From Amoebophrya sp. A120 (lineage: Eukaryota; Protista; Dinoflagellata): a stretch of 64,000 bases of DNA. The DNA lies in the NCBI GenBank assembly GCA_905178155.1, contig CAJINV010000022.1, forward strand, positions 62,001 through 126,000. Reading direction: 5' to 3'. Numbering within the stretch: the stretch's first letter is position 1; each line of letters starts with the position of its first letter. Positions 17,001-59,973 of this stretch are shown here, piece after piece. Under the pieces are notes generated by a model. It was not told where the DNA came from. It ran no database searches and was given only the letters and a program-made list of their open reading frames with translations. The position numbers and the translations under genes are program-made.

Positions 17001-20000
17001 ATGGGACGCCCTGCCCTTAGCCTTCCAACATGACAGACTCCGGAATCCAAAACAGCACTGCAGTCCCCTAGGAATTTGTCATGCAAAAGCTGCATCTTTG
17101 CCAGTGCTTGTGTTGCTGTTCATGCAACACAAATGAGGGGGAGGGGGAGTTGTGCACTCTCATATCAAAGCGTGTTCCTTTACGACCCGCGGGAAGACGT
17201 CCGATTCGCCTTCAACGACCCGGCCAGCCGACAGTACCTATGCATGGCAGAAGTGTCTCGGTCTGGAAGGTTGCAACATGTCATGCTATGTCTGGACTGT
17301 GAGAAAATCCTGTGTTGCATGGTTACCAAAAGTTGTCTATATATTTTTGACCACTCAGCGAGGAAGTTTCTCATGCGGGCTAGGCATGAGAAAGCTCATC
17401 TCACAGAATCTGTCATGCTATGTCCTGCACGCCAGACCTCATGGGTCATGGGAAACCTGCGTGACAAGTCTCCCAATCTCCCAGACCCGGACATATTTGC
17501 ATTTGATAGTACCGCGCGGCGGATAACTCGCACCCGAGCGAACTAGCGAGGTTGGAGATGGGCCGTGATGTGGGGAAAATGATTCGGAAATTGATGGATA
17601 CTTCGGGTGGAATTGTGGGCGGTGGCGAGGGTACTCCGTACGTGCCGCCAACTGGAGGAGCTCCTGCACTGGACGCAGCCAACCCGAGCACCGAGAAAGG
17701 CACGGGGAAGGGAGCTGATACGCAGATGCCCTCCAATACCGGCGGGAATGACATGCCACCAGCGGGTTCTGACGAGACAAATAAAGGCACGGGGAAGGGC
17801 GGTGACACGCAGATGATGCCACCCAGCACTGGTGGGAGTATGCCCCCTGCTACAGGCTCTGACCAATCTGACAAGGGCACCGGGAAGGGAGGTGACATGC
17901 AGATGCCGCCTAGCACCGGTGGAAATTACATGTCACCAGCAGGAAGTTCTACTGACCAGACAAACAAGGGCACTGGAAAAGGCGACACGCAGATGCCACC
18001 CAGCACCGGTGCTGGGAATGATTTGATGCCCCCAACAACCGGCTCCAATGATGGCCCTACAACTGACAAGGGCACGGGGAAAGGCGAAAGCCCTAGTAGC
18101 CCGCCCACCACTGGAACCATGCCGGGCACGGGTTCTGGTGACGCAAGCAAGGGAACGGGCAAAGGGGTACTTACTTATTTATTTTTCAACTACTTTGTCA
18201 TGCCTGCTGCTGCTACGGCTTTGCAAAACGAAACTTTCCGACTCTGTCATGTATGTTGATACAACTTGGCAAAAGAGAAATCGAAGATCTAAAACCCAAC
18301 CATCATTCACAATCAACAGTCCGCCCCCGGAGCAGGCGGACCCGGCGGCTCTTCCCCCGCGACCACTTGCACCAATCGTCCCTGCGCCGCCCCGCTTCTC
18401 GGTGACATTGCTTTCACAACCAGGAATGGAGTCGTGAATAACCAAGTTGTCCACCCGGCCGGGGAAAATATCTACGGCCCCTTTGAGGCCGGGTTCGGCG
18501 CGCAGCAGAATTTCATCCTGGAGCAGCTCGGTTGCGCAAACGGGAACGACGGGCATGTGGATGGGGGAATCGACACGCATATGGATTGCAAAAGTATCGT
18601 ACTAGTACAAATAGCATTACAAATTAACTCAGCATTACAAATGAAATTTGTAATGCTGTTTGACCTTGGGAGCGAGATTTGTCATGCATTGCAAAGCAAT
18701 TACTACAAGTGCGATACTTTTGCAGTTCATAACGCACTTGGCGGAGCAATTAGTTGCATTTCAATGCAACATTGACTTGCCCCGGTACGACCACAGTACA
18801 ACAAATTCTGCCGGCGAGTACATTTCTCTTCTCGACGATATGGCGTTCTCAAACGTTACATTCTGAATTGTTACACGTTTTGTCATGCAGATTTACAATC
18901 AGAATCGACACGATGAAGCTGCTTCGCATGACAAATTCTCGAAGAGCCAAACAGGCTGGGAATCTGTGCCAAATCTGTCATGCAAGACACGCAAGGCCAC
19001 CCCTTTCACTTTTGCCATTCCTGCATCACAAACTCATGTAACAGCTGAGAGTGTAACAGTTGAGAGCGCCATAGACGAGTGCGGCGGACACACGCGCGAA
19101 TACCACTTCCACGAGAGACTCAGCTGCTTGTACGAGTCGGGGTTTGGAACCAGTGGGGTCTACCATTCGGTAGCAATCGGTGCCGAGGCTGGTACTAGTT
19201 CCTCTGCTGGTGATGGTACAACTTCTAGTAGAAAGCAACTGTACGGCAAATTCGAAAACACAGAACAGGGTTTGTTACCGAACCTCGACGCCTGCAACGG
19301 TATGCACTGCAAATATGTCTGGGTCTGAAAACTTGTGATGCTAAAATGTGGATGATGGAAACACTTTCGAATGCAGCCCAGCATGACAACTTTCCAGAGC
19401 GCTTTCTCATAGGCAGTCCGCATGAGAAACTGCGTACAAAAGAGGCCGCGACTCTTGTTGGTTATGCAGTACAGATTTCCTAGCTATGAAAAGCTAGCAT
19501 TACAAATTCCAACTTTCCAGACCCAGACATATTTGCATTTGATAAACGGGCATTTCGGCACCACCCCGGATAGCAACAACGAAGTCGTTTATCATTATCA
19601 CGTGACGGAGCGTCCGCCTTTCACGATTGATATGACAGTGCACAACTCGTCTCCCTCCCCCCCATTTGTCATGCAAAACCCCAAATCCAAGTGCTTCCCT
19701 TTGGCACTGTTTGCATGACAGATTCGTCCAGAAGCCCAAACAGTACTACTTACACGAGGCGCGTCGCAAATTTGTCATGCACAGGCTCCACGTGTGCTGG
19801 TGTTTGTATTGCTGTTCATGCAATACAAATGAGGGGGAGGGGGAGTTGTGCAATCTCATAACTGGCTGCTACGGCCCGGAATACGGCACGGAGACCCTCG
19901 CAACCACGGGGGAAATCATCCAAGTCGAGAAGCTTGTGACGCTATGCATTGCAAATATGTCTGGTTCTGGAAACTTGTCATGCTGGGTGGCGTATCATGA

Positions 20001-23000
20001 GGAGGCCACAATTACTGGCTCAGCATGACAAGTTTCTGAGCTCCTTCTAGGTGTTGCCTATTCTGCATGACAAACTGCGTCTCTACTGCATAACAGAAAA
20101 GTGGGGCTCTTGGGCAATGTGCGTGACAGATTTAAGAGTCATGCCAGACAAGCATGACGAACGTGCATTCTTCCAGACCCAGACATATTTGCACTTGATA
20201 GACGCTGGAAAAGTGTCGCAGCTTGTACAGTGGGTGCGGGTCGACTCCGGTGACGCTGACGGTTCGAAATGCGGCTGGGTATCAAATGCAAATATGTCAT
20301 CTGGCTCTGGAATGTTGCAGGACTTGTCATGCAGGTTTTCCATGACCCATCAGGTCTGGAATGCGAGACCCAGCATGACAGATTCTCTGAGGTCTCTATC
20401 ATGCCTTTCCTGCACGAGAAACTCCCTCTCAACTTGGTCAAAAGCGGACAGCTTTTGGCACTCACGCAGCACAGATTTTTGCATCATTCAGATTTAGCAT
20501 GACAAGTTTTAATCTTCCAGACCCAGACATTTGCAATGCATACTGGGACTGCGGAGCGGATTCCTTACCGGAAGTGGTGTCCGTGTTACGACCAGAACGG
20601 ATCGAACGTTGGGAATGCAGAGTTGAAAGTCTTTGCTGGAGCTGACGTGACGCAGATGAAAAGTGTTGCAGCAGTGCCCGGCGCTCCGATTTATGCGACA
20701 CTGCCGCCGGCACCTGCAACGACTGCTGTTCCCCCAGCAACGACTGCTGTTCCCCCAGCGGCGCCTCCGGTCGCCACAGCAGCGCCACCAGTCGCCACAG
20801 CGGCACCACCAGTCGCCACAGCAGCGCCTCCGATCGTGGTAACGACAGCCGCTCCACCCTCCCCACCGATTCTGCCGCCGCCGTCCATTAAGGGCTTCGT
20901 CACTGTCGCCGGGAATAACAAGTGGGGCGGGGTGCATCCGAGTATGTGCATGCGGGCGGCGTTCGGAGGGGACGTCACGACTAACTCCCACGAGCTGATT
21001 GCCGACAAAGCGAATGTGCGGTGTTGCTCGGTCGATGAGAAAGGCAAGATCAAGATGGACAAGTATGGTGGGACTAGACACGGAAGGGACGTCTGCGAAG
21101 ATTTGAAAGACATGCCGTTTGAAAAAGCCCGGCACCACTGCGTTTCGCACGGCTTCCGGCTCTGCACACAGGAGGAACTGGAGGAAAACCGAGCCGCCGG
21201 CACCGGCTGTTTGTTCGACCGGACCCGCGTCTGGTCCTTATGCATTGCAGATATGTCTGGGCCTGGAAGAGTGCAAACTTGTGATGCGCATTTCACAACA
21301 CATAAAAATCTCTCATGCATAGGCAGCAAAACCAAAAGAAGTTACCCACTTTCTGTCACGAAAGTCGGGCATTTGTCATGCGGATTCGGCATTGCGGAGG
21401 CTTGTCGAAACCTGTGATGCGAGAGCTTCCATGCCAGCCCTCCTGTGTCATGCAAAAGCAGCATGACTCTTACAGACCCAGACGACATATTTGCAATTCA
21501 TAGTCCTCGACTCAGTGCGATTTGTCCAAGGACTGCGGTTGCGACGTGACCAGCGACACCCAGCCGGTTTGCGGCAAAAATGGACAGACGTTCAAAAACC
21601 GGTGTCTCGCGATGTGCAAGCAGTATCCAGTGCAAAAGTATCGTACTAGTATAAATCGCATTACAAATCAGCTCAGCATTACAAATCAAACCTGTAATGC
21701 TGTTTTACCTCAGGAGAGAGATTTGTCATGCATAACAGCAATTACTACGAGTGCGATACTTTTGCAATTCATAAGCAAGTCGAGGTGGCGAGCCTCGGGC
21801 CCTGTGCGTTCGCCGGGGAGCGGGTTGTCACCGTGGTCGGGATATCAAATGCAAAAATGTCTGCGTCTGTGAGGATGCGAACTTGTAATGCTGCACCTGG
21901 ATTCTACAAAAATCTGTGTTGCGTGAACAGCAAAAGAGGTCCAATTTTTGCCACTGCGAGAGGGCATTTCTCATGCGGTATACGCATCAGGAAGCCCTCA
22001 CAAAATCTGTGATGCTAGGGCATGCACCACAGACATCTGGACCCATGCTAAATGTGCATGACAAACCTTGCCTCCTTCCAGACCCAGACATATTTGCATC
22101 TGATAGGGGAATAAAAAGTTCAACGAACTAATCCCCTCGTATTGCACCGTCGCGCAGGAGAAGGCTAATGTCCGTTGCTGCAGCAAGGACGGGAGCGGAA
22201 AGATCAAGATGGGGGAGTACGGCGGGGTGAGCCAGGGACGGGATGTCTGCGATGATTTGAAAGACATGACATTCCCCGAGGCGGAGCAACACTGCGAGGC
22301 ACACGGGTTCCGGCTCTGTAAGCAAGATGAGCTTGAGTCGAACCGTGCGGCGGGCACGGGGTGCATGTTTGATGTCACCCGAGTTTGGTCCAAGACCAAG
22401 TGCGGCGGACCGGAAGAGTGCTACTGTTCGTTGGATGAAACAGAGTACGGCCCGGTCTGCGGGTCGGACAACAACACGGACAAAAACGAGTGTTTGGCAA
22501 AGTGTAAAAATGCCAAAGTGCAGCATCTCGGGTCTTGCTCCGCTAGTCTGCCGAAATTAGTCACCTTGGCCGGCAACAAGCGGTGGAGCAACAGAAACCC
22601 GAAAATGTGCGCCGCCGCGGACGCGAAAGCGAACATTCGGTGCTGCGGGGAAAAGAAAATCACCATGGACAAGTATGGCGGGACTAAGAAGGGCAGGGAT
22701 GTCTGCGATGATTATGAACTGCAAAAGTATCGTACCTACTAGTATAAATCGCATGACAAATAATTTCCTCAGCATGAGAAATTAAGTTTGTGATGCGGGT
22801 TTACGTAAAGAAAACAATTTGTAATGCATGTCTGCGATTACTACTAGTACGATACTTTTGCAATGCATAACGATCTGAAGCAAGCGACGTTTTTCGAAGC
22901 CGAGAAGCATTGTACTGATCACGGGTTCCGACTCTGCTCCGAGGAAGAATTGGAAACGAACCGTGCGGCAGGAACCGGGTGCCTTTTTGACCGGACGAGG

Positions 23001-26000
23001 GTATGGTCGAGCAGTACCTGTGACAGTACCGAAGATCCGCCGGTGGCTACTACTTCTCTTCCGCCGCCCCCAGTAACGACCAAAGAACCCCCGGCGCTGT
23101 GTCACTGCACAAAAGAGTACAACCCTGTGTGTGGACTTGACGGCACCACCTACGGCAACCCGTGCATGGCAACGTGTGCCAACGCAGAGATCGCTTACGA
23201 AGGGGAATGTAAGGACGACGACGAGGAGCCGATCTTCACGGGCCCGCCGCCTTGTTACTGCACGGAGGAATATGCACCCGTTTGCGGCCACGATGGGAAG
23301 ACGTACGGTAACTCCTGCAAGGCGGACGGCTGCGGATATGGTCCGGGGGTGGATTTTGTTGGGGAATGCGAAGATGAAAATAACCAAAATAACAACCTCC
23401 CCCCACCCTCCTGGTCGAAGATGCTGCTCGGCGCGAGAGCGCACCTCTCTTCCACGCTCGCGCACTACGAGGCGCAGGCGTGCTTCGACGGGAGACGGAC
23501 GACACTGGATCCGCGAGAGCCGAATTCGGTTTGGGACAAAGCGGCTATGCCGGAAAACGCCCCGAACATCCGGAATTGGGTCCACGACGTTTTCCCGAAC
23601 GTCGCGCACTACGAATCGGGGCTGCCGTGTCGGTATGCACTGCAAAAACATCGTACTCGTACTAAAATGGCGTTTATGCATTACAAATTTTTTTCTTAAG
23701 GCAAATCCGCATTACAAAATTAATTTGTAATGCTACGTCAATTTGTCATGCAATTTGTGCTAGTACAAGTACGACTACGACACTTTTGCAGTTCATACTC
23801 CTTCCGGTTGGGGCCGAAACACCTACATCTTCGCGGAGTACCCCCAAAGAATCGAGGTGACAAACTTCGAAGTGTATCCCTTTATCGAACGGCCGTACCG
23901 GTTAGTCGCGCCGGGGCAGCACCCGATGTGCGACCCGCGACCGAAGATGTTGGAGGTTTCTTCCGGGAGTAGTACAGAAGTAGTTCCGGGATTGGGAACA
24001 ACTTCTACTCCCCCCCTCCGTTTCGGCACCGAGAACCTGCCGAGAGAGTGTCAGTGCGAGATTGGGAAGGACCCGTGCGGAGCGTTAGTTGGCGTCTCCG
24101 ACCGCGTTCCTTGCAACCACCAGAATCCTATCGCAGGAAACAAGTGCTACAGTTACACATTTTGTTGCAGGCCGAGCAAGACAGACCAGCTCTGTCATGC
24201 CGCATATGCATAGGAGTCTTGTTTCATAGGTGTTTTCCTGTAGGATTCCTGCATTGCAAGTTTTCTATCTCATGCAGAGAAATTTGTGTTGCTGAATTGA
24301 CAACAAATGTGTAACTGAAACACTTTTTTCTTGCGATAAATCCTGACGGCTGCAGAGTATCCAACAAGGATGTGACAATTTGCGGGAAAATCGATGTTGT
24401 GGATGTGCAGAAATCGCTGTGGGAGTGGGAAACATTACCAGATGGGACGAAAACTTTAAAAAGACGACGGTGGCCGAAGGGGATTCCGGTCAAGTGTGAC
24501 AAAAATGTCAAGGGGAGATTTGCGTTTCTTTTACTCCCCTCTGGGGAGGTGGAGCGGATGCAGTCTTACCCCGGGCCGACGGGGTTGCGGATTCTGTCCA
24601 TGACAGAATTGTCGGTTTATGGGCGGTTTTTGAACACGACAAGCACGACGACTTTGGCACCTGTTACGACGACGACTTTAGCGCCGACGACAACGACGCC
24701 GGAACCGACGACCACAACACTCGTGCCTACCACTACAACACTGGCGCCTACCACCACGACAACACCCCCGCCAACCACAACCCTGACAAGTACAACCACG
24801 CTGACCAGCACGACGCAAACTTTCACCACGACAAGCACGGTGACGGAAACTAGTACGTCCACGGTGACGACGACTTCTACGGTGACGGAAACGACGACTT
24901 CTACGGTCACGCAAACTACAACCAGTACTGTGACGGAAACAACAACGAGTACCGTGACGCAGACAACAACTTTGCCTGTCACGTACACCACAACGGTGAC
25001 TTCAACGAGCACACAGACCACAACCAGCACCCAGACGACCACCGTGACACAAACGACAACTTCAACCGTGACGCAGACTACGACGGTGACCACAACTACT
25101 CCGGAGCCAACTACGACGACAGTAAAGCCGACGACTACGACTCTTCAGCCGACTACCACAACAGCTGAGCCACCGACGAGCACGATAGTTCCTGAGGAAA
25201 CGACGGCGAAGCCAGTTGTGACTAGTAGTACAAGTACTGCTGCGCCGACTTCTACTACGACTTTGGCGCCGACTTCTACTACGACTTTGGCGCCGACGAC
25301 GACGACGCTGGCGCCGACGACGACGACGTTGACCAGCACCACAACTATCACGACGACGATCACCTTCACCACTACCAGTACGATGACGCAGACCACCACT
25401 TCCACGGTAACGGAGACTACGACCGCTACGGTGACGCAGACCACCACTTCTACGGCCACGCAAACGACGACAATTACGCAGACAACCACTACGAGAGTGC
25501 ACAACTTTCCCTCCCTCTCATTTGCGTTGCATGAACAGCAACACAAGTGCTGGCAAAGATGCAGCTTTTGCATGACAAGTTCCTAGAGGACTGTAGTGCT
25601 GTTTTGGATTCATCCCGAATCTGTCATGCAAGCAGTGCTAACAGGCAAAGGGTGGATTTGGACTTTTGCATGACAAATGAGCGGGAGGGGGAGTTGTGCA
25701 CATTCATAACCACGTCTACCGTGACTCAAACGACAACGTCGACAATGACGCAAACTACAACTAGCACGGCTACGCAAACCACAACCAGCACGGCTACCCA
25801 GACCACAACCAGCACAGTGACTCAGACCACAACCAGCACAGCAACTCAGACCACAACCAGTACAATGACGCAAACGACGACTAGCACAGTGACTCAGACC
25901 ACGACTAGTACGGTTACCCAAACCACGACCCAGACCACAACGCAGACCACAACGCAGACCACAACTCAAACCACAACGCAAACCACGACCCAAACCACCA

Positions 26001-29000
26001 CCACCACGGTTTTGGTCCTGCCTTTCGCGCCCCCGGATACAGAGGAGGTCTTTGACGAGGAGGTGCAGCAGGTTTCTGGTTCTGCGACAGTGGGTATGGC
26101 GTTACCGGCCGGGACGAGTGGGGAGGATCTCTTAAACAACCAAGAAGTGGTCACCTCCTTTCAGCAGACCTTCGCGGATCAGTACTCTGTTCCCGCTGAT
26201 AACGTTGTGGTCACCGGATTTCAGGTCAACGGAGTTCTTGTCAGACGCGGTCGTGCCCGGGTTCTCATGCAGGACCAGCGGAAGCTGCAAGAAGCTCCTC
26301 AACAAAGCACCTCCACATCCGCCGAAGTAACCTGTAATTACGACATTCAGGTGCAGGACGCGCAAGACATCGAGCGGATCCAGGAGAAGGCGCAGTTAAT
26401 TCAGCCGGAGCAGTTGAAACAAACTCTCACTACCTCGATCGCGGCGCACGTGAAATCGTTGGAGCTGGTGATTTATGAACTGCAAAAATGTCTGGGTCTC
26501 GAAGGATGTGAACTTGTGATGCGCATTTCACAACACAGACAAATCTCTCACGCCTAGGTAGCAAAAGATGTCCATTTCCTGTCACCAAAGTGGGGGATTT
26601 GTCATGCGGATTAGCAATGCGGAAGCTTCTCGGAATCTGTGATACTGGGGCTTCCATGATAGACATCCTGCGTCATGCAAAAACAGCATGACTCGTCTTC
26701 CAGACCGAGACGTTTTTGCATTTGATATGATTAATGAGGTCAAGAAGCTGGTCAGCTTGTTGAACTGCAACACGGTGATTGCGAACGGGCAGTGTGTGGA
26801 GCAGATGCAGCAAAACTTTTGTGTCCACCAGTGTCAAGTCCACGAGGCTTTGAAGAACGCGATGGTGGGTATGCAAAGCAAAAGTATCTATCGTGCAACT
26901 GGTAATTTGCATTATACAATTTTTTTCAGAAGGAAAAACAAAAAGTGAGTTTGTAATGCTGAATTAGATTGTAGGAGCGAGACCATGTTGTCTGTCATGC
27001 TGTGCCACAATTCCTACGAGTGCGATACTTTTGCAGTGGATAGTGGGCTTACAAGGGCTGGCCGACGTTTTGGACGATCAGGAGGACAATTCAGACGATG
27101 AACCTGAAGAGGACATCAGCGATGAAGAGGAGGGTGCAGACGGGGATGAAAGCATCCCGACCGCCACCACGGCCTTGAAGATCAAGGAGCGAGCGGATGG
27201 AGAGAAGGTGTCTACTTCCTCTGCCGGGGGTTCTGGTGACGACGGCACGCAGTTTATCTTTTACATCGCTCTGGGCGCGGGGATTCCGTTTACTTGCATT
27301 TTTTTGTACTTGCTGCAGAAAAAGTGCGAGAAGAACAAGAAGAAATCTCTCGCTTCGAAGATGGACATGTACGAGAAGCAAAGCAACACCAGTTCCACCG
27401 CAACGGGGACCAATAATCGCAATGGAACAAATGTAGACGATTTGATCGAGGTCCAGTCCATCTCTACCGGTGTTGACAGCAACTTTGTCGTCGGCCAGCC
27501 GCTGGCAGGCGAGACCACCCAGAACGCGACGACCGCGATGCAAGAAAAGTCGAATTCCGCGACATTGTATGCATTGCAAATACGGCTGGGTCTGGAAGAA
27601 TGCAAGTTTGTCATGCTTGTGTCACATGACTCGTAAATCTGTAATGCATGAGCAGGAAAATAAAAGGCTCTCTCATCTGTTATGCAAATATGCAGTTTGT
27701 CATGCGGAAAGCGAAACACACAGGAGCCCAAAAACTTGTCATGCGTGGCTGCATATTGCAATGCGCCCACCATTCAAAAAGTAGCATCACGAGTTTCCAG
27801 ACCCAGAAATATTTGCATTTGATACATTGGTGATCCCGACCGGCTACGTGAAGGAGGGGCAGGAGAAGTATGACAAAACGCAAGTGATGAAGTTTGAGAC
27901 GAAGCAAAACAAAATGAAGATGAAGACGAAAAAATCTTCGAGTAACAATGATAATCGTATGAATTTCGAGGAGGAGTTTAACTTTGACGACTTTGTCATC
28001 CCGGATGAGGAGGAGGAACTTGGTCGTGGGAACCAGCATCACAAAAATGGTACTACTGCTGCTCAGCAGCATAACAGTAACAGTAACCTCTCCACGAGCG
28101 AACAAATTAACCCAGGTCAGGCCATCAATGTGGAACTCACCCCGTAACAAATGTGAAAATGTCTGGGTCTGGAAGAATGCAACTTGTGATGCTAAATCAG
28201 AAGCATGCAAAAATCTGTGTTGCATGATTACCGAAAGTCGTCCAGTTGTGACCAAGTCGGGAGGGCGTTTCTCATGCAGGATAGACATGAGAGAGATCGC
28301 TCAGATTCTGTCATGCTAGGTCCTGCATTACAGACTTCATGGGTCATGGAAAAGCTGCATGACAAATCGCGCACTCTTCCAGACCCAGACACTTTTGCAT
28401 TTGAGACCCCGCCCAAAGTGCCGAAAGGTGCTCGCTTGGCCCGGAAGGTGGAGGAAGAGGACGATGGTGGAGCTGCCAAGTATCAAATGAAAAAATGTCT
28501 GGGTCTGGAAGGTGGCAACTTGTCATGGTAAATCTGAATCATGTAAAAATCTGTGTTGCATGATTACCAAAAGCTGTCCACTTTTGCGAAGTTGATTGGA
28601 GTTTCTCATGCAGGAATTGCATGGCAGAGACCTCCTCGCGGAGTCTGTCATGCTAAGTGCCGCATTCCAGACCTCATGGGTCATCGAAAATCTGCATGAC
28701 AAGTTATACACTTTTCCAGACCCAGACACTTTTGCACTTGATACGAAGGTGCACATGCCGATCCCCGGGATGCGGAAATCGTCTGGGAGGCTGTCGAAGC
28801 CCAATGTAGCTCCTTCCGATGAACAGCAGGCTCCTACTTCGCAGACTTCTCAAAGTCCGAAGAAGAAGTCCCAAAAGATTGCGGACCCCCTCGGGCCCTA
28901 CATGGGCACTGAGGAAATTCTGGCCCCGCAAGACGGGGTCGGGGAGGGAAGCGGAAATCATTTTCATGCAGGAGACCACGCGCCGATGTCGCCGGGGGCG

Positions 29001-33300: not shown

Positions 33301-33388
33301 CGCAACTAGTTCTTCATACCGTTACCGTCTGCTTACCTGGAATCCAATACTCGATTATCTTTTGCACCCTCTCGTCCAGATCTCGAAG

Positions 33389-34305
33389 ATGTCCGCTCCC
33401 GAACAGGAAATCCAAAAAGTCCGCCAAGCAGCCGAAGACTACGCTTTCGGCTGGTACTTGAAACAACCAGAGAGGATCGGCAACGCCCTGCACGACAAGC
33501 TGGTGAAGCGAACTCTTGAGCAGCCGAACGACCAACTGAAGGAGATCACTAAGCAGGATTTGGTTCGGTTAACCGAAGAAAAAGAGGGAATCGACGCGGA
33601 GGATATGCAGCAGTGCGACATTTATCAAATGCAAAAATGTCTGGGTTTGGAAGATTTCTAGATTTGTCATGCATATTTTCCATGAGCCATGACGTCTGTG
33701 ATGCATGCCGTAGCATCACAGATTTTTAGAGGGCTTTGTGATACGTCTACCGCATGAGAAATGCCCTCTCCCCGTAGGAGAAACTGGAGTCCTCTTGCTG
33801 GTCATGCAATACAATTTTTTTTTTAGAATCCAAATACAGCATCACAAATTTAGAATCTTCCAGACCCAGACATTTTTGCATTGGATAACATTAAGGTGGA
33901 TTTCGTTGGCGGGCCGGGAAACGGTTGCGCGATGTTGGAATTGGAAATGAAGCATTGGTTTGACTTCATGCAGCTGGTGAAAATGGAAAACGGAGAGTGG
34001 AAAATTGTGAACGTGCTGTGGATATCAAATGCAAAAATGTCTAGGTCTGGAAGGATCCGAGCTTGTGATGCGAGTTGCGGATCGTACGTAGAAAGATCTG
34101 TGTTGCATGACTGGCAAAAGGTGCTCCCTTCTGGCCATGCTGACAGGGTAATACTAAATAGGCATCACCATCACGAAGGGGCTGCAGAACCTGTGATGCT
34201 AGGCCACGCATTCCAGACTTCCGGGAGCTTGGAAAAACTGCATGACAAATCCCGGAATCTTCCAGACCCAGACATTTTTGCAATGCATAGTGGAAGGCGA
34301 AGTAA
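33389..34305 (+). CDS. NTF2/SnoaL-fold protein, lumazine-binding-2-like (~124 aa), 2 introners
   Basis: After removing 33623-33887 and 34023-34289: MSAPEQEIQKVRQAAEDYAFGWY...ERIGNALHDKLVKR...WFDFMQLVKMENGEWKIVNVLWKAK*. The DY..GWY, ALH..L.KR and G.WKIVNVLW pattern is typical of this family. Confidence 0.8.
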
Positions 34306-36374: not shown

Positions 36375-36755
36375 ATGCCTCGCCCACCATTGCTGCAACT
36401 GTGGAAACAGTTTTGCTGGACCTGCCGCCAATTGCCCGACAACGTACGGCGACGGGAAATTAGGATTGCTAGAGGGTATATGCACTGCAAAAGTGTCGCA
36501 CTTACTAGTATAAATCGCAATACAAATTTTTCCAGAAAGATAGATGGAATTTGTAATGCTGATTATGCTAAGAAACAAGATTTGTCATGCGTGATTGCAA
36601 TTAGTACGAGTGCGATACTTTTGCACAGGATAGGGCATTTGAAAAACCTAGACGAACCAAAACGGGTCCCGGCAATACGCTACCAGCTGAGAAATATGGA
36701 GCAGGTTGTCCAAATGATCAAGTACAGAAGCATCAAAAGGAGGTATGATTTGTAA
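36375..36755 (+). CDS. Small LYR-motif-like protein (~73 aa), 1 introner
   Basis: Removing 36479-36632 gives MPRPPLLQLWKQFCWTCRQLPDNVRRREIRIARG(Y/H)LKNLDEPKRVPAIRYQLRNMEQVVQMIKYRSIKRRYDL*. Size, basic composition and the L.LWK...R.LP pattern resemble Complex1_LYR proteins. Confidence 0.55.
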   Translation: MPRPPLLQLWKQFCWTCRQLPDNVRRREIRIARGYMHCKSVALTSINRNTNFSRKIDGICNADYAKKQDLSCVIAISTSAILLHRIGHLKNLDEPKRVPAIRYQLRNMEQVVQMIKYRSIKRRYDL

Positions 36756-37384
36756 AAACGAACAAGAAACTGGAACTGTGCCTGTTTTATTGCATCAGGA
36801 TTCACAAGATTCTATCGCAGAATGGATGTTGGCTTCGGTGGGCCGATTGAAAAGCTTTGTCGGCGTTCAAGGGTCTGCTATTATGCAGATGAAGGGAGAG
36901 CCAGAACGTTCCAAGAAGGTTTGTTCAGTCTTGTTTTCCGCATTTTTCGAAAACCAGGCTCAACATTTACCATCCATCGTTGTAAACATTGCGCATGCGA
37001 GCTCATGAGGCGTGCATTCGCTTGTCGTCGTTTGTGAGAGTGACATTTAGTCGATGTTTGTGCCCGGTTGTAACGAGAGACACAGGGCTCGTCTAGCTGC
37101 AGCTCTTCCATTTCGTCGTGTCACTACAACTACCAACTAAATTCGTACCATTCTAATTTCCGCACCTCGTAATTTTTCGATTTCTTCATGATGTTCATGT
37201 TTCCTTGGACTGAATTCATTGTATTTGTATATTGTTCACAATAAAACCAGATCGTAAAAATCGTATAAAAGCGAGAGAGGGTGGTGCGAAACCATGACAC
37301 CAGCCTCTTTCGCGGTTGAAGCAAGAAGTCAAAGAAATCTAACGAGATAGAAGTCCGACACGAAAACCTCCGCGCAACTACAGC

Positions 37385-40300
37385 ATGGCCGCTGCGAAAG
37401 TCTGGATGGAACCCACCTCCAGGCCGAGCCGGCCGTTGAGCGCTCTACCGGTCCGGGGCGGGACGCCTTTGACAGGCGGGTACGGAATATGGATTGCAAA
37501 AATGTCTGGGTCTGGAAGAAAGCAACTTGTGATGCTATTTTTGGAATCTAAAAAAATCTGTATTGCATGAGCAGAAAGAGGCGTCCAGTTTTTGCTCCGG
37601 GGAGAGAGCATTTGTCATGCGTGATAGGCATCAAGATACCCGCAAAAAATTTGTGATGCTGGTGCATACATCGCAGACATCACGGGTCATGCAAAATGTG
37701 CATGACAAACCTTGCAATCTTCCAGACCCAGACATTTTTGCATTTGATACGGAAACTGGGGCGTGCCGAGGTACTCACTTTTCTTGCTCATATGATGTGT
37801 TTCCGCATGACAAAGTCGCTGCTCATCGCAAAATGAAAATTTCCTTCCTAGTATCCTCTACCGAAGGCCGCGAAATTTGTTTTAAAATCCCACACACAGC
37901 ACGCACCCCTCCGGCCCGACCGGGATAGGCGGCGGGGCAGTGAGTTCCTCTTCCGGGAAGAATCACTCCAACCCCAACTCCCAGCAGTTCCCGACGAACA
38001 AACCCAATAGCACGGCAAACCAGCTTATCAAATGCAAAAATGTCTGGGTCTGGAAACTTGTGATGCAAGCCCGTGAACAGTAACTTAACTTTTCTGTAAT
38101 GCACCGCCAAGCATGACAAGTTTTTTCGTGCTCTTGTGCTGCGTATTTCGCATGAGAAATAACTGCGCTTTTGCATGACAGCCAAGAGGGCCCCTTGGTG
38201 GCCACGCAATACAGAGTGCAGAATCATGCCAGACTAGCATGACAAATCTTGCAATCTTCCAGACCCAGACACTTTTGCATTTGATACAGCTGAAACAGCG
38301 ACCTAAATCCGCTTTGACTCGCCCAGGCCGGCACATGAAGAGATCAGGGTCGGCGCACGGAAACACAACTTTGGATACACTTATGGGAGTGTCAGGATCG
38401 AAATCGACAAAGTCGAAAAATTTGTAATGCATAAAATGTAGGGCCCATAAGGCCTGTGTTGGAGAGGAGGGAAATGAGACCGATTGCAAGCCTGTTTAGC
38501 CCTAAACATTTACTGCCAGAGTAGCATGACAGGCGCAGTCTTGTTTGCCTAAACAGCATGACAGACTGGGTTTTGGTGCTCCCAAAATTTGTCATGCGCC
38601 ACTTGGAAACTGAGTCCCCAACTGGTATCGATTTTATGCGTCACAAATTATTTCGATTTTGTTGATTTCGATCCTGACGCTTCCATAACACTGCTTTTCG
38701 ACGGACTCTTCGCACCCCACCAGTATGCGAAACACGGCGGTGGTGGAACAACAGCTGCAAACGGAACCCATCACAACTCCGGCGGTGCGAACGGTTTTAT
38801 CTCCGCGTCGGCGAATAACATAGCAGCGGTGAAAATGAACCCATATGGATACCAGTTAGGGAAAACAGCCGGGGGGAATAATTACTCAAATCTGGACAAG
38901 AGAAAAAACCCGATCCGTGGCGGCATAAAGAACCGAGCGGTCAGTCCTGCGGGGTCTACCGGGAGCGGCGCTGGGGGGATCATAAGAGAGAACAGCAATA
39001 CAGGCGGGATAAACAACAACGGGTCTAGAGAACAAAAAAAGCGCACTTCCGCAGAGCACTTTCTCGCGACCATGAATATTCCCGGAAATCCGCATAGCAA
39101 GCCGGGGAGTAGAGCCGGATCGAAGCCCAACGCCGGAATGATAACGACGCAGCAGCAGAACCAAGCGAATGTACAGTCGGATCTGACGAAGACTTTACAG
39201 ACAATCAAACAGCAGATAGAGCGGGAGAAGATGCGGTTAGCCGCGCCAAACAAGTTCAACAAATACGACACAAGGATGAACTGGCAGCAGACGCCGACGA
39301 GCGGAGCGTCTGGTGGGATGAAACAGCGCCCGCAGACTGCCGGTATGTACCGGACGAGGACGTCTGGTAGTGGTGGCTCCAACACAAACGTCATCTCCCC
39401 CGGCGCCTCCAAGCAAAACAACAATAACTCCAGCGACCGAATGCTAAGGGTATCAAATGCAAATATGTCTGGGTCTGGAAGAATGCAAGTTTGTCATGCT
39501 TGTCTGGAATGAGTGTTAAATCTGTGATGCATGAGCAGGAAAAGGACCTCTTGTCTGTCATGCAAAAACGCAGTTTGTCATGCGAAAAACGAAACACACA
39601 GCAGCGCAAAAACTACTTGTCATGCTGGGCTGCATATTTTAGTGCGCCCACAATTCGTAGATTTGCATCACAAGTTTCCAGACCCAGACATTTTTGCATT
39701 TGATAAGGGGAGCTGAACGACCACACAGCTGCAGCTCCGAAACAACGGCAGCGACCAACGACCGCGCATGTGGACCGGCTGAGAACGGTTGCGGCGAGCG
39801 ACCCGCGGTTAAATCTTCACAACCGGGCAGGAGCTTTGGGGAACAACCACACGAGACCAACCTCCGCGCACCCCGCGTCTGCCGCCCATCACGCGGCACA
39901 CGACCTGCAGTATGTGTTGCATCACGAGCGGCCGAAGTCGGCGTCGGCGGCCTCGAGTAGTCGGCAGGTCAAGGCGGACATGGTGGATAGAAGCGGGAAG
40001 ACAATACCTTCGACGTTGCTGGAGGGGGGAAGCTATGTGACCGGGAAAACGATTGGACAGGGGGCTTACGCGGTATAAGGAAGTGGTGGTTTTGAATTTG
40101 CATTTGGCTTTTTGTGATGCGAGAACTGCATAAGAAGCGGTGTTTGTCATGCACCATTCCGTACACATTAATATCAAACAGTCCGTCCGCGTCTGCACCC
40201 ACCACCCCTCGGAGAAGAACTACGCGGTGAAAATTTTCGACAAGACCCGGTCGCACTGGGAAAACCGGAAGAAACTGGTTTACCGAGAGGTGAAATTGAT

Positions 40301-42126
40301 GGAAAAGATCTGCCGGGATAATGAGCACATTTGCAAATTTCTCGAATACGTGGACTGTTCCAATTTTCTGCACTTGTTCCAGGAGCTCGTCAACGGGGGG
40401 AATTTGCGACAAGAGCTCAACAAAAAGCAACTACGGAGAATAAGCGAGGGGACGGTATGATAAATAGCTATTTGAATGATGTCAACAGGCATTTCTGACA
40501 AACCGCATTTCGGCTGTCATGCGGAGTTGGCAAATAAAATTGAGAACATGAATTTTGTGTACTACCAGGTCCGCAACTACTTTTGGCAAATCTGCGACGG
40601 GATAGAATACCTCCATCACAACCTCGTGGTCCACCGGGATATAAAATTGGAAAACCTTCTGCTCCACCACAACTCCTATGCATTGCAAAAGTATCGTGCT
40701 CGTACTAATCGCAGTCATGCAATGCAAGTTTGTTTCTCAAGCCAAATCCGCATTACAAATTTCATTTTTCACTTTGAGCAAACTTGTCCTGCGGTTTATA
40801 CAACTAGTGCGATGCTTTTGCATTGCATAACTCCCACGGCGTGACGATAAAAATCGTTGATTTTGGCTTCGCGGTGAAGCTCCAGACGCCGACGCAGAAG
40901 CTGAAAGTCTTCTGCGGGACGCCCAGTTACATGTCGCCCGAAATCGTAGCCGGAAAGGAGTTATGCACTGCAAATATGTCTGGGTCTGGAAGAATCCACG
41001 ACTTGTCATGCAGGTTTCCCTTGACCCAGGAGGTCTGCAATGCACGCCGTAGCATCACAAGTTTTACAAGAGCTTTGCAATGCCCAGTCTGCATGAGAAA
41101 TCCCAGTCAACAGAGGTTGCTAAAAATGAACAGCTTTTGCATCTCATGCATGACAGATTTATGTGTGATTGGCAGGGAGCATCACAAACCTGAACCATTC
41201 CAGACCCAGACATATTTGCATTTGATGGGAGTACAGCGGGTTCCAGAGCGACGTGTGGGCGCTGGGTGTGGTACTTCTTGTTGTTCACAACTTTCTCTTC
41301 GTAGAATGTAATATGCGAAGTGCGTTAACTCGAAAACTCGATTGCATGATCACCACGACCACGCATGACAAACAGGAGCTGTCATGCATAATTGCAATAT
41401 AAAAGGTTCTCTATGTGCTCCTCTGCGGCCGCTTCCCGTTTAAGGCGAACCAGGAACACGAGCTTTACCACAAAATCCGGCGGGGGCAGTTCTCCCTAGC
41501 GGATAACCACGTATCTTCCACTGCAAAAAGAGTGATCAAGGGCATCCTCCGCGTAGACGGCAACCTCCGACCGGTGGTGTCGCAAGTGGTCAACCACGCG
41601 TGGGTGTTGTCCGGATCCACCGCGGCTATGGCGGGGCGGCACTCAGAACACGCACAGCAGGAGAGGTCGTCGCAGAATATCAGCACGTCATCGTCGAAAG
41701 AGATAGATTTGGGCATTATCGCAGACAACAGCACGCACAGCAACGGAGTAGTTGCTGGCACCACGGGAGGGGGTTTTACAGAAGGGATAACTTTGAGTAG
41801 ACCCAGCAGTGCGGCCGGAGGAGCAAGCACATCGGGAGCTGGGCCGGGGAGGGTATCTTTCACAAGAGTCTGAATTTTGTTTTGCGGAGTTACCTAATAT
41901 GAAGTTTCATCGTCATTCTGTCATGCATGCTTGCAATTCTAACTTGTGTATGCTGTAATAAGTCCACGAACTACAACTTCTCCAGGTCGACAGTGCCAGT
42001 TTTGTCGGTGTCGCTCCGGACACTATCGAGGGCGAAACACCCCGGCACTACACAAATAGCCTGTCAAACAGCCAAACGGGGGTCTACGCAGCCACGACGC
42101 TCGATAAGCTATCCACCGGGGAGTAG
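37385..42126 (+). CDS. CAMK-group (MARK/SNF1-like) Ser/Thr protein kinase with long low-complexity N-terminus (~862 aa)
   Basis: IGQGAYASV, YAVKIF, HRDIKLEN, IVDFGFA, FCGTPSYMSPE, SDVWALGVVLY. Six introners plus GT-AG introns 37771-37899, 40073-40181, 40455-40568, 41271-41405 and 41853-41985. Confidence 0.92.
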
Positions 42127-43728
42127 GAGGAGGGAGACGCCCTGTTCGACTGCTAAGCAAGCGGGAAGCTGCTTCTGGTCCTGCTGCAGAACCGGAAACG
42201 AGAAATCAAAACTTTTTAGAAAAATCGCAATCTAATACCATATCAAAACCGAAGTCATCTGTTAATGTTACTAGAGTTACCAAGCTTAATATCCAGTTTC
42301 AATGTTACTAGAATTTTTCGCAAAAATACAATCTGCTACTCAACAGCTAAGGCCGCACGGCAATGGCTCGTTGTAGCAAGTAATCATCCTTCAGAACTTT
42401 CTGATTCTGACCAGAACTTTTTACTCTTCATTACTTCCTTTTGTGGTGCTGGTTGCAAGTAGAGCGATGAATTAGTGATTCATTCAGACGTAGATCATGA
42501 CAGTAGCAACTGTATCTTGAAGTTTGGCCTATGAATATTTGCTACAGGGAGCGGGTGGACGAAGGGAACAAACGGTTAATACAGCGCCAGCACCATGCCA
42601 CTTTTAGAGACCACAGTTTTACGACCAGAAAGAAAAGCACGATATTAAGCTTCAGCAACCAGGCAGTCGTCTGGAACCACGAAATTTATGTCGACCTCCT
42701 GCGCTCGCTGCGCCAGGGGGTAGATGAAAATAGAAGATGAAATAGAACTCCAGTATAGCTCGGCCAGCTATAATTCTTGGGGTAAATAAGATTTCATCGT
42801 GAACAACCCAAAACTTTATGATCTGTAGGACACGCTGCACACGAGAACTTCAACTTTGAAGTCTCGTCTATCGAAATAAGAAATCTTCAAAAATGAACAT
42901 GTACTTACTTTCTTCACAAGAAACTATCAACTCCCACGACGTTCCTCATGTATTATTTTGACCTTTATCCTCAAGCCCATTTTATTCTCTCGAAAAAACG
43001 CTATCATGGGCAGACCTCGGCAGAAGTAGCTAGTTATGAAAAGAGTTTTCTTCTCTACTTGTCATAGGTGGGGAGATAGAAATTTCGTATGAACTACTAC
43101 CAAAAAATGAACAATGCTACTGATGAAAGAACCGTAAGATGTCAATTCAAAACGAGGTCGGAAATATTGCTAGGAATTGCTACTGGCATGGGCGGCAGGA
43201 GTGCTAGTAGCTACCTGCGCTGTTTTCTGCTCGTGCATTCTTGCAAACTTTTGATGCATTTTTCTACCTGTTCCAACCGATCCGGAGCAATTTACTTACG
43301 AGAAACCGCAAGAACAAAGCGAGTCCGGCTGCGTGTATCGATCCCTGTATTTCACGCGATCTAAAGCAAGATCCATGCTATCGTGCGTGGTTGTTTTTTC
43401 TCCCGATTTTCAGAGGATCTCCATCTCCATCTCCTTCATATAGGATCCTTTTCGTGTTACCAACATGTCTCAGCGACAACTAAAAGAAGTAGAGTCCTAA
43501 TTAAACAACATCTGAACGTTTTTTAGAGCGGGTCGAATACCTTCAGCTTGATTGAGAGATATTACCTGTACATACTTCATAGGTCACTCATCAAGTAGTC
43601 CATCAAGTTCGAGTGTAGCTAGTTCATCGGCCGGAGTCTTTTTGTTTCCCATTCCCCCTATTTGCAAAGGCCCAAACTTTTCACACAGAAGGGGTTCTGC
43701 GAAAGATATACGAAAACTTTGCCAAATT

Positions 43729-44371
43729 ATGTCGTCCAAAAAGTGGGACTTCAAGCTGGAGTCCAGCTCGAACGTGCTGGTTGCGCAAGAGAAATCCACC
43801 GCGCTGGACAAGATCGACCCAAGTCTGGGCTGGAAAGCGGATGACAGCACAATATCAACGGTAACGGGCCAACCAAAGAAGGCAGCGGTGGACAAAACGT
43901 TTTTAGATAGGAAAGCCTGGGAAGCGGTCATGCAGCCATGTCAAGCGGTATATTGATGGTTTGATTCTTCTTATTGCATGCGCGTGCATTTTTACAGATC
44001 GAGTCCTGATGGTGCAATGACGTGCATGGCAAATGAAAATGATCTGATACATCTACTAACCCTCACAGGTTTTCATGAACATGTTCATGCTCTGGATGAT
44101 GGGCAGCAACCCGGGGATTTTCGGAATTATGATGCTCGCGTACGCGTACAGCAGCGGTATCGCGCAGTTGAAAAACGTCAACAACGTCTTCCTGCCCTTC
44201 TCCCAGCAGGGCGTAGACTGCAGTTTCCAGAAAATTGCTTACGTCGTGATCTGCGTCGCGGTGCTTGGGTACTTGACGTATAGTGCCAGTGGGATGGGTT
44301 TATTGCCGACGCAGACGGGGGACTGGATCTCGAAAATCCCCTACGTGCCGATACAGGAGCGGATCATTTAA
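43729..44371 (+). CDS. EMC4: ER membrane protein complex subunit 4 (~173 aa)
   Basis: KAWEAVMQP..AVFMNMFMLWMMGSNPGIFGIMM and MGLLPTQTGDWI. One GT-AG intron 43948-44068 with a TACTAAC branch point. Confidence 0.9.
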
Positions 44372-45458
44372 CTGTAGTGCAAGAAGAGCAAAAACGCTTT
44401 CGATGTACTTTGGCGACAACAAACCGCACCGTAATGAAAACGACATTTCCACCACGGCAAAAAATATGACCTTTATTACTCCACGACGGAGATGGGGTGC
44501 TAGAGATCATCAGACCTCTCCATTCCAACGGGTCTTGTTTCATCGTTGCTGATATTGCAGCGTCTGAAAAGGACTTGTGTTTGTCTTTGATCATCTCGAC
44601 GAGAAAGTAGATCCATTGCTATCTGGTTCTTTGTTCCACGAAAAAGATCCTATTCATGATGAGTAGGCACCCGCACCTGATGCAGCTTCACCCGCTCTTC
44701 ATGCGCACACGCAGCACATCAGATTTTCAATGAGTACATTGCCTAGTACTACCCGCGAGATCTCCTTGATATTTTTGTCGATCCAATAGTCAGCTCGCAA
44801 GGATCTCTACCATGATGCCCAATATCGTCTCTAGCTCTGCACGGAACCGAAGTAGATCACCTTTTCGACGACGCTTGTTTGATTTAAGTTTTTATCTTGT
44901 CTTCTTTCGCGGAAGCTTTTGCCATGTTGCGCTAGGGTAGACTAGATCTTAGTCTTACTTTTGGTGTCTTCGCAGCTTACCTTAGCTCATATCGTGTAGA
45001 GCAGTAACGAGCTTGTTCAGTCTGACCGATCGACTAGAAGATCTACGAAGCTATCCAACCTAAAAAATATTTCGCTGTTGACGACTAGTAGATCTATCAG
45101 TGTTGCCGCATTCATTGCGTATAATAGCCATTGCGCATGTAGTTCAAATACCTTTAGATCCATACACGTAACTCAACAATTATTTTCTTCGCGCACCTTG
45201 TGTTGCAAATTCCTTTCCCAAATAAACAACAGCGGTAAAGGAATTTCTTGGTTGAGAGTTTCTCTCAAGTTGTCAAGAAATTCGATCTATTATTCTAGAT
45301 CACTAGACTAAGTCGTTGCTAGCTACAACAGCACGGCTTCAGGAGTCAGTAGTTGTTTTAACGAACAGGTTCGATAGTTTGTTCTTACCCTACAACTTAT
45401 TCGCACAATAATTCATTTTCAGTTTTTCACTAGATTTCTGTACCCAAAATCCAATAAA

Positions 45459-48400
45459 ATGTCGCAACAAGAGATGAACAAAATTAAGCAGGAGATTGTC
45501 TCCAACCCGGGATCGCCTCTGGAGGAGGAAAAGTCCAGTCCGGCGGAGGAAAAGAAGAACAGCAGTTCGCAAAAAAGCGACAAAAACACCCCATCGAAGT
45601 CCGAGCCCAGCCCGGCAAAATCGGATAGGTCGGCCGGAAGTGAAGATGTGCACGCTCAGGGAGAGGATGGTATACATTATTTTCACTTGAAGATGTTCTT
45701 GGTCTCCTATTCTAAGTTCTATTTGATAGCACCCTGAAGATGATGACCCTGTGCAGCACCGCTCTTCACATTCGCATGATGTTCTTGACAAAACAGTTTT
45801 CAAATTCGCCAAAAAATCTCCAGTCGCGGCCCTGAACGAGGAAGCGGAGGATGGAGAGGAACAGCAACCTGAGCTGATGGAAGACTTATCCTGTGCAAAA
45901 GCATCGTACTCGTATTGCAATCATGCATTACAAATCTTTTTGCTGAGGTAGATCCGCATTACAAATTTTATTTCTCATGCTGAGGAAATTTGTAATGCAT
46001 TCATACGAGTGCGATACTTTTGCAGTTCATAAGATTCCGAGGATGACGATGACGAAGACATGGACGACGAAATTCCGGCCGACAGCGGCATTGCCGCGCT
46101 GATGCAGCAGCACGACAAGTTCAAGACCGCCAAGGAAGACAAGACCTATCCTGTGCAAAAGTATCGTACTCGTAGTAATCGCAGTCATGCTTTACAAATC
46201 TCCATCCCAAGGCAAATCAGCATGACAAATTGCATTTCTCATGCTCTTGCGCTAATTTGTCATGCGATTCATACTAGTACGATACTTTTGCAATGCATAA
46301 GACCATGAAGAATACGAAACTAATGTCAGAGAACAAATCTAAGCCCGCGAAGATGGGCGGGGGAGATCTACTTGACGATGGCTACATGATATGGATTGCA
46401 AATTATATGTCTGGGTCTGGAAACTTGTAATGCTAAAAGTGAATGATAGACGCACTGCAATTATACGCAGCTACGCATGACAAATTTTTTGGCTGACATG
46501 TCTTACGTATTCCGCATGTCAAAGTGCGTTTTTGCATGACAGGCAAGAGGGCCTTTTCGTGCCTATGCAACACAGATTCGCGTGTCATGCCAGACAAGCA
46601 TGACAAACTTGTATTCTTCCAGACCCAGACGTATTTGCATTTGATACATGAGCCACCTGTACAACGCGAATGGCGAGATGATGCACGATCCGAAGGACAA
46701 GATGTCCTTCGCGGACGAGTATCCTGTGCAAAAGTATCGTACTCGTAATGCAGCATTACAAATTTTTTTCCGAAGCCAAATCCGCATGACAAATCCTATC
46801 TTTCATGCTGAGGAAATTTGTAATGCATTTATATATACGAAAGCGATACTTTTGCAATGCATAACGAAGACAGGCCAGAATTTAACTCCCCCTACGAGAA
46901 GTTTGACGGGAGTCCGTTTGACGATTTCAAGAACAAGGACGTGGGCGGGATCTACGACAAGAGCAGTGGGAAGAAGGACAAGATATGGATTGCAAAAATC
47001 TTTGAGTCTGGAAGATTGTAATTGTCATGCTAAATCTGAATCATGCAGAAATCTTTTTTGCATGAGTGCCAAGCTGTCCATTTTCGACGAACTTTGGAGG
47101 GAGTTTCTCATGCAGGAAAGGTATGGCAGAGACGTCACAGACTCTGTCATGCTAGGTCCCGCATTCCAGACCTCGCAAGTCATGGAAAACCTGCATGACA
47201 AGTCTTGCATTCTTCCAGACCCAGACATTTTTGCATTTGATACAAGATTATGTTGGACGATTTGGAGCACTTTATGACCGGGAAGAAAAAGAAGGGGAAG
47301 AAGGGAAAGGTAGAAAGAGAAGAACTGCAGCTACATATATTGATTCTTCAGCATGACAGACTAGGTAGAGCTCAGCTAGACAAAACCAAAAGACCAACAC
47401 ATGTGTAGTTCAGCTAGACAAAAGAGAGACCAACACATGTGTAGTTCTTTCTCATGCAGCTGCACGACAGATCTTGTTTCAGTGTCCATACGAAGATACG
47501 CGCATGACAAATCGAAATCCGGACCTAGAATACGTGTGCAAAAAAAAATGCGTGAAAATCGAAATCAATCACAGAAAGCCGCCACGGTCGGATTCGGCGT
47601 GAAAAAATCGGGTAAGAAAAAAGGCGCCACTACCCGAGAGTCCTGGTCCAGCTACATCCACAAGGTTTTGAAAACGGTGCACGGCGAGAACTGCGGTATG
47701 AGCTCCAAGGGAATGGACATCGTTGATTGCTTTGCGCACGACATTTTCGAGCGGTTGGTGGACGAAGCGACGCGACTCATGCGGTTGAACAGCCGAAACA
47801 CCATGACCAGCAGGGAAATGCAGACCGCGTGCCGATTGATCTTGCCAGGTATAGGATTAAGTTTAGAATATCATGTTGTAGTATGAGTGACTGCATTACA
47901 GAAATGATATAGTCATGCTCGTTCTTGCTACACAAGTTGTAGTCCTTTTGCAGCTACTACACACGTTGCACTGATAGAAACATGTTGTTTGTCATGCATA
48001 ATTTATCCCCATCTTACAACTATCAGGTCAACTGGCACAGCACGCGATTCAGGACGGCACCCAGGCGGTGCGCAATTACGACGAAGCGTGTGGCAAGGTC
48101 CGAGACGACGATATTTTCCGAAATAACGAGGACGGTGGGCAGTCGGTGGCGTCTTCTAGAATGATGGGCGAGGATGATACGGACGACGAGGACAGCGAGG
48201 GGGATGATGACGATATGGCAGAGAAGTTTAACAAGCAGAAGCGGAAGGCGGCGGGAGATGACAAGTATGCATTGCAAAAGTATCGTACTCGTATAAATGC
48301 ATTACAAGTTTCCTTAGCATGAGGAATGAAATTTGTAATGCGGATTTGACTCAACAAAAAGATTTGTAATGCATGATTGCAATACGAATACGATACTTTT

Positions 48401-59751: not shown

Positions 59752-59973
59752 ATGATCGAGATTATCCTGAACGACCGAATCGGGAAGAAAATTCGGGTAA
59801 AGTGCAACCCCGACGACACCATTGGCGACATCAAGAAGCTGGTCGCCGCACAGTCCGGTGTCAGGCCAGAGAAGATCAGGCTGCAAAAGTGGTACCAGAT
59901 CTACAAGGACCACATCACGCTCCAGGACTACGAAATCAAGGACGGCATGGGCATTGAGTTGTATTACAACTAG
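59752..59973 (+). CDS. UBL5: Ubiquitin-like protein 5 / Hub1 (73 aa, intronless)
   Basis: [36 protein letters not shown]...[23 protein letters not shown], with the C-terminal YY. Confidence 0.97.

Follow-up and report, generated by a model that had tools for sequence, protein, structure and literature searches.

How the ~30,000 introners of Amoebophrya move, and how introns without conventional borders are recognized, are open questions. A 64-kb stretch of the Amoebophrya sp. A120 genome raises them in a concrete form: its introner families share one short word, and the same word recurs in ordinary GT-AG introns. This stretch (contig CAJINV010000022.1, here C22, positions 62001-126000; hereafter the window, to which coordinates without a prefix refer) was analysed within the assembly of 115.5 Mb in 401 contigs. 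According to Farhat 2021 (PMC7789003), A120 introners occur in thousands of copies, are removed from RNA without GT-AG borders and form an RNA hairpin; their inverted repeats consist of TAT, ~7 variable nucleotides and AAA, they are accompanied by 3-5-nt direct repeats, and their mobilization was given as unknown. The repeats in the window match this description, and the introners themselves are therefore already known. The shared word, with the extended consensus AAAYTTGTNATGC, is our subject. We favour, at about an even chance, the reading that the introner superfamily is recognized at AAAYTTGTNATGC, a conserved subterminal site that probably serves an integrase-type transposase; the motif-bearing GT-AG introns would then be derivatives that lack the ends. 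The word is probably the handle by which intron-making transposons are recognized.

We counted the exact 8-mer on both strands of the window and found 242 copies, whereas dinucleotide shuffles gave 10.4±2.9 with a maximum of 17:

2094..63050, unstranded: exact 8-mer copies TGTNATGC/GCATNACA, n=242

Alignment of all window copies yielded the 13-mer consensus AAAYTTGTNATGC, the N of which is C in 48%, A in 29%, G in 20% and T in 2% of the copies; T is thus nearly never used. Across the genome the 8-mer TGTNATGC occurs 183,871 times, compared with 7,978 for a reversed-word control, and the 13-mer 32,140 times, compared with 17. An earlier note on this DNA, made from the letters alone, had claimed that the motif is shared by the introner families in both orientations and is enriched; the claim holds, and more strongly than it was first put.

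By BLAST family assignment, 212 of the 242 copies lie within 15.9 kb of introner DNA (~13 per kb). The contexts of the other 30 were judged by eye. Approximately 12 fall in eight GT-AG introns that the earlier note had listed and ~11 in further TAT-ended elements missed by our filter; ~4-7 are in exons or unclear places, the chance level for the ~45 kb outside introns, which agrees with its impression that the motif is scarce in exons and intergenic DNA. Sets of 'exons' delimited by long open frames proved to include intron sequence and were not used to assess exon avoidance. Neither motif nor introner was found in two stretches of 3-4 kb, 30250-33620 and 42100-45880. Judged by transcript length and open reading frame (ORF) pattern, these stretches are 3' untranslated region or intergenic. 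Introner insertions appear to be confined to the coding parts of genes.

We then defined elements by structure, namely TAT...ATA ends, at least 13-15 of 20 arm bases paired and a 4-5 of 5 match of the 5-bp flanking repeats. This search detected 160 elements in 278 kb and none in shuffled sequence; the window holds 58 strict TAT...ATA elements. The 160 elements form 13 clusters with unrelated end sequences and arms, and 156 of them contain the exact motif, with ~3 copies each. The first copy stands 33-47 nt from either end in every multi-copy cluster. AAAYTTGTNATGC points inward in most families and is reversed in family B, and same-orientation copies follow one another ~28-39 nt apart in several families, like an array. 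The following introners illustrate the arrangement (motif positions are counted from the first base of the feature, with their strand; TSD, target-site duplication):

37488..37749, plus strand: family A introner of 262 bp, ends TAT..TGCAAAAATGTCTGGGTCTGGAA, TSD CGGAA, motif at 41+, 126+, 165+ and 213-

48266..48410, plus strand: family B introner of 145 bp, ends TAT..TGCAAAAGTATCGTACTCGTA, TSD ACAAG, motif at 34-, 69+ and 100+

40677..40829, plus strand: family B introner with TSD ACTCC and a single exact motif copy at 74-; 158 nt missing from the transcript (element plus 5)

40962..41227, plus strand: family A introner, four motif copies; transcript skips 271 nt

18839..19073, plus strand: family C introner, ends TATGGCGTTCTCAAACGTTACATTCT, TSD GACGA, motif at 43+, 88-, 138+ and 185-; rod fold, z -6.6

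3693..3901, plus strand: family D introner, ends TATCGCAAGAAAAAACTGTTTCAC, TSD TGAAG, motif at 33+ and 157+

38382..38687, plus strand: family E introner, ends TATGGGAGTGTCAGGATCGAAATC, TSD ACACT, motif at 42+, 143-, 175- and 209+; transcript skips 311 nt

19631..19860, plus strand: family F introner, ends TATGACAGTGCACAACTCG, motif at 37+, 83- and 143+

57421..57581, plus strand: introner without an exact copy; its one-mismatch variants include AATTTGGCATGC, which lies in the usual position, ~31-43 nt in from the left end

Motif orientation in the family B element 48266..48410 is opposite to that in family A, at equal distance from the end. Copies of a family appear to lie in both orientations inside plus-strand genes, and excision of an element with one duplication restores plus-strand open frames of up to 1,547 codons. 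When family representatives were compared by BLAST, only the motif and its variants aligned between families, among them a second recurrent variant, AAATCTGTATTGCATGAG; the inter-family high-scoring segment pairs were 8-30 nt long and nearly all centred on the motif or a variant. The earlier note was therefore right that the families cannot otherwise be aligned.

Two further observations concern the same elements. A second recurrent word, AAATCTGTATTGCATGAGCAG (core TGTATTGC), occurs for example at 37554-37574 and also in families B, C, F and G, which are otherwise unrelated. At 5269-6316 lies a family-B element of 1,048 bp with a TCGAA duplication, the left-centre part of which is replaced by ~850 bp of GC-rich sequence that is unrelated to it and has no evident ORF.

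Among the 160 elements, arm positions 1-3 pair in 100%, positions 4-8 are variable and positions 9-29 pair in ~75-97%. Two introners folded into rods with paired ends (z-scores -6.6 and -7.7), and opposite-orientation copies of the motif pair with each other in the predicted folds. Such folds would suit a purely structural module, in which the motif is the inner part of long palindromic arms and selection acts on pairing and not on the word. We consider this highly improbable. The same word is present in families with unrelated paired arms, and it occurs singly or in one orientation in GT-AG introns that are unstructured. In addition, the N bases are unable to pair in ~80% of mirrored outer motif pairs; therefore, the word itself is kept and not merely its pairing.

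In the mirrored outer pairs of the 160 elements, N is mostly G in one arm and C in the other (27 of 49), which places a G-G or C-C mismatch in mid-helix. A 5-nt box at arm positions 4-8, equal in length to the TSD, is dimorphic (37491-37495 and 37742-37746; at ~1501 in L014-L042). In one young family-A subfamily it reads GGATT or CAAAT at either end, in any combination, so that the ends often cannot pair. The substitution rate of this box is 0.18, compared with ~0.04 in the remaining arm.

Conservation of the word was assessed in samples that are a tiny fraction of each family. In a young family-A subfamily (30 copies, 91-96% identical), substitution rates were 0.006 at the TAT tips, 0.029 at the exact motif and 0.026 at the variant motif, and 0.039 in the inverted-end stem and 0.049 in the other interior. 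The difference between the motif and the other interior was significant (P=0.003), and CpG sites were not elevated. Among 70 older copies of family A, and likewise among 34 copies of family B and 24 of a third family, the motif columns form conserved islands comparable to the arms, with a variable N column; in the older family-A copies the spacers vary as well.

Transcript contigs from two runs, the type of which we guess to be RNA, were mapped to 37400-42100. They have exactly the spliced form and agree with published RNA-seq results. At each of six joints, an element and a further 5 nt are skipped, with non-GT-AG ends; at the family A introner 37488..37749, for instance, the transcript lacks the element and one TSD copy, with non-GT-AG borders. 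The five remaining joints are ordinary GT-AG introns. Within this 4.7-kb stretch, the non-canonical introns carry 24 motif copies in 1,533 bp and the five confirmed GT-AG introns seven copies in 620 bp (11 per kb; Poisson P=2×10−11). The exons carry none in 2,548 bp. At least one copy is present in 11 of 11 transcript-verified introns of this one gene. The 2026 RNA runs X8 and X9 gave no coverage of this gene. In run X8, 87 raw reads match only the right arm of the family-A element (37716-37749) and run on into different sequence to either side; a copy that is left unspliced, located elsewhere or in another strain, is therefore abundant in the X8 sample.

The earlier note also placed the motif in conventionally spliced introns, and the 12 copies that it listed are all there (18196, 37805, 40113, 40145, 40515, 41363, 41380, 41919, 47351, 47502, 47893 and 47990). 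They lie in eight introns:

18167..18322, plus strand: GT-AG intron, by ORF continuity; motif at 30+

37771..37899, plus strand: GT-AG intron I1, by transcript; motif at 35-

40073..40181, plus strand: GT-AG intron I2, by transcript; motif at 41+ and 73+ (32-nt spacing, introner-like)

40455..40568, plus strand: GT-AG intron I3, by transcript; motif at 61+

41271..41405, plus strand: GT-AG intron I4, by transcript; inverted motif pair at 93- and 110+

41853..41985, plus strand: GT-AG intron I5, by transcript; motif at 67+

47310..47575, plus strand: GT-AG intron, borders of the earlier note with an approximate 3' end; motif at 42- and 193-

47849..48026, plus strand: GT-AG intron, borders of the earlier note with a 3' end that fits ORF logic; motif at 45- and 142+

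An ORF-based prediction of GT-AG introns produced too many false positives and was not used. With seven copies in plus and five in minus orientation, the eight introns show no strand bias relative to transcription. Distances from the motif to the 3' splice site range from 19 to ~120 nt, and the distance is fixed to neither splice site. All eight introns begin G|TA(C/T/G), the start expected from insertion of a TAT/TAC-ended element after a G, and in five of the eight the first copy is 30-45 nt in from the 5' end, as in an introner arm. Similarity to the element library extends over only 12-26 nt around the motif. At the sensitivity of our genome search, I2-I5 had no second genome copy. Folding of the GT-AG introns did not exceed that of shuffled sequence (z -1.75 to +0.72), and no inverted ends were found in them.

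We asked whether the word could be a branch point or another RNA signal of the spliceosome. UGUNAUGC includes UNAY, in which the degenerate base directly precedes the A; the N of the motif coincides with a variable position of the mammalian yUnAy consensus, and in five GT-AG introns the last plus-strand copy is 21-62 nt upstream of the 3' splice site. This explanation is nevertheless very doubtful, since three of the eight introns carry the motif in minus orientation only, no constant distance is kept, the copy closest to the 3' end is in minus orientation in families A, C and E, and the introns of a relative (below) are without the motif. Neither the Rfam U2 model nor a conserved-U2 pattern gave a match to U2 small nuclear RNA (snRNA) genome-wide.

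We compared the gene, which encodes a kinase, with its closest outside relative, on the metagenome contig L043 (5,555 bp; 61-100% amino-acid identity per exon). A reverse search with L043 recovered the kinase gene (67% identity) ahead of the next paralogue (48%), so that the two are reciprocal best matches. Where I2, I3, I4 and the two intervening introners (40677..40829 and 40962..41227) are inserted, the coding sequence of the relative is continuous; the relative's own two GT-AG introns are placed elsewhere. TGTNATGC is absent from these two introns and from the whole 5,555-bp contig. Like the introners, the GT-AG introns that bear the motif are therefore specific to the lineage, although loss in the relative is conceivable. 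Upstream of the relative's kinase gene, a hairpin-forming repeat of 28-30 nt (ATTTGAAGGTGGAGCGAGCTC...; L043:45-354) is present three times; it is unrelated to the A120 motif.

We also found the motif in larger mobile elements. A young Ty3/gypsy element at C22:615292-627388 (L002:292 to L008:2388) has reverse transcriptase, RNase H and integrase domains and two long terminal repeats (LTRs) of 1,679 bp each, 100% identical, each with five GCATTACAAAT-type copies within ~330 bp. LTRs are where promoters lie, and the word could accordingly be a site used by something else, either a landing site of retroelements (with GCATGACA as a putative target word) or a site shared by a transcription or silencing factor. 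We regard this as scarcely probable; it leaves the fixed distance from the element ends unexplained, and the window has no copies of the motif in its intergenic and upstream stretches.

The second large element is an 11.7-kb TAT...ATA element at C22:664161-675899 (L001:4161 to L007:5899) with 24 of 24 paired end positions and a 5-bp duplication, GTTCA. A half-matching variant, AAAWYTGTTYTAT, is situated ~41 nt from both ends, the usual place of the motif. Its interior holds 16 motif copies, several of them, by reading, in short GT-AG intron-like stretches of minus-strand genes. The ORFs of this element matched nothing in Pfam or the protein atlas, and no integrase was recognizable among them. 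Four identical rve hits, considered as a candidate mobilizer, were rejected: they belong to an ordinary 7-kb LTR retrotransposon with few motif copies.

Taken together, these distributions could also be produced by a host 'intron licence'. Here, a factor, perhaps a domesticated transposase domain, would read AAAYTTGTNATGC in either orientation on DNA or pre-mRNA, and the surrounding segment would be marked for removal by a spliceosome that lacks U1. Unrelated mobile elements and GT-AG introns would then keep the motif by purifying selection, and genes would tolerate any insertion that bears the motif, be it an element with inverted ends, an LTR or a segment that has no paired ends. Consistent with this, all verified introns of the kinase gene carry the motif and its exons do not, GT-AG introns keep exact copies after their ends and all other similarity have gone, copies are found in the gypsy LTRs and, within the 11.7-kb transposon, in GT-AG introns of its genes, and young copies have fewer substitutions at the motif. 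U1 snRNA was reported as not detected in A120 (PMC7789003), which likewise counts for the licence. We still judge it unlikely, though well worth considering. The lack of strand bias, together with several introns that have the motif in one orientation only, is awkward for an RNA-binding factor, and the distance to the 3' splice site is variable. The GT-AG introns of the relative, the spliceosome of which may differ, do without the motif. The earlier note counted eight of 16 GT-AG introns without an exact copy, and the introner 57421..57581 has variants only. Moreover, we know of no DNA-read intron mark in any organism.

The earlier note had itself offered two explanations, an intron-definition signal or a transposase-site relic. 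The first is opposed by the orientation, the splice-site distances and the introns of the relative; what remains of it is that GT-AG introns keep exact motifs and that every verified intron has one. The second fits best, but not as a plain decayed relic: in the GT-AG introns, end pairing and family similarity have been lost while exact motifs are kept near introner density. A recognition site accounts for the data best because the motif has a fixed subterminal place across unrelated arms, is spaced like an array, is conserved and is lineage-specific.

We therefore return to the recognition site, for which the sequences suggest the following scheme. The superfamily would consist of non-autonomous DNA transposons with TAT...ATA ends, ~30-nt family-specific inverted ends and a 5-bp target duplication. 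The mobilizing transposase would read AAAYTTGTNATGC and not the family-specific inverted repeat; this would account for a single motif being common to ~2,000 families whose arms are unrelated. It may bind several copies per arm, the first of them 33-47 bp from the tip, join the ends and cut at the invariant TAT tips. The inverted arms would mainly serve to fold the transcript for removal of the element and one duplication. Motif-bearing GT-AG introns could be insertions of the same lineage-specific wave that are conventionally spliced, their paired ends having been lost or never present. From the TSD length and published hints, the enzyme would most likely be a DDE transposase of the retroviral-integrase type. 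Inverted-end elements with integrase-like ORFs have been reported in A120 (Gozashti 2025, PMC12130899); such ORFs would suit the 5-bp duplication.

Several observations weigh against this scheme. The copies in the Ty3/gypsy LTRs are left unexplained, as a retrotransposon should not need the site of a DNA transposase. We found no autonomous element whose ends contain the exact motif, and the one large element examined has the half-matching variant only. Under neutral decay, ends and motif should fade together, yet the GT-AG introns have exact motifs at 11 per kb without inverted ends or family similarity. The opposite motif orientation of family B at equal end distance is a further difficulty. 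Singleton substitutions were not significantly depleted at the motif in the young family-A subfamily, and the lower substitution rate there could equally reflect host-level selection after insertion instead of selection on master copies for mobility.

Several transposons are known to have more than one subterminal transposase site, namely En/Spm (12-bp TnpA motifs), Ac (AAACGG repeats), the P element (sites internal to its 31-bp inverted repeat), Mu and Tn7, the last two of which make 5-bp duplications. The A120 motif resembles them in that several short conserved sites stand in both orientations near each end, at distances of tens to hundreds of bp and apart from the terminal repeat, and such repeats are kept by non-autonomous derivatives. 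It differs in that the terminal repeats here are completely different between families and that the motif is also present in introns without paired ends and in an LTR. Transposase binding in A120 is, unlike in those systems, putative and read from sequence.

Farhat 2021 (PMC7789003) describes introners with the same TAT/~7 nt/AAA repeats, 5-bp direct repeats, non-GT-AG borders and hairpin, and defines them by their terminal repeats only; no transposase was found in A120, and no family-wide sequence beyond TAT and the A run was given. Its searched text and supplement mention no internal shared word, fixed subterminal place or presence in GT-AG introns. A term search of Gozashti 2025 (PMC12130899) and a 2024 review (PMC11282704), within the text accessible to it, returned no internal shared word either, and a full-text literature search for the 8-mers returned only unrelated papers. 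The integrase-like A120 'family 38' (PMC12130899) and Ginger transposons offer a candidate class of mobilizer, with a DDE integrase-type enzyme, inverted ends and a 4-6-bp duplication; the 11.7-kb element differs from them in having no recognizable integrase. The nonconventional introns of euglenids and diplonemids (PMC3935182, PMC6221363) are alike in their non-canonical borders, RNA-paired ends, TSD-like repeats and suspected origin from miniature inverted-repeat transposable elements. They differ in belonging to another lineage and in having only three conserved paired nucleotides near the ends, and no shared internal word was reported for them.

A word of 13 nt provides a concrete, mutable target for the study of mobilization and for the search for an autonomous element. 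It also provides a sequence tag that can tell transposon-derived introns from ancestral ones in the A120 genome.

Two features of the longest restored reading frame (1,547 codons) were noted in passing. It contains long arrays of 24-nt (8-codon) Thr-rich coding repeats at 24675-26011 and, by eye, a Kazal-like stretch near 21560-21640.

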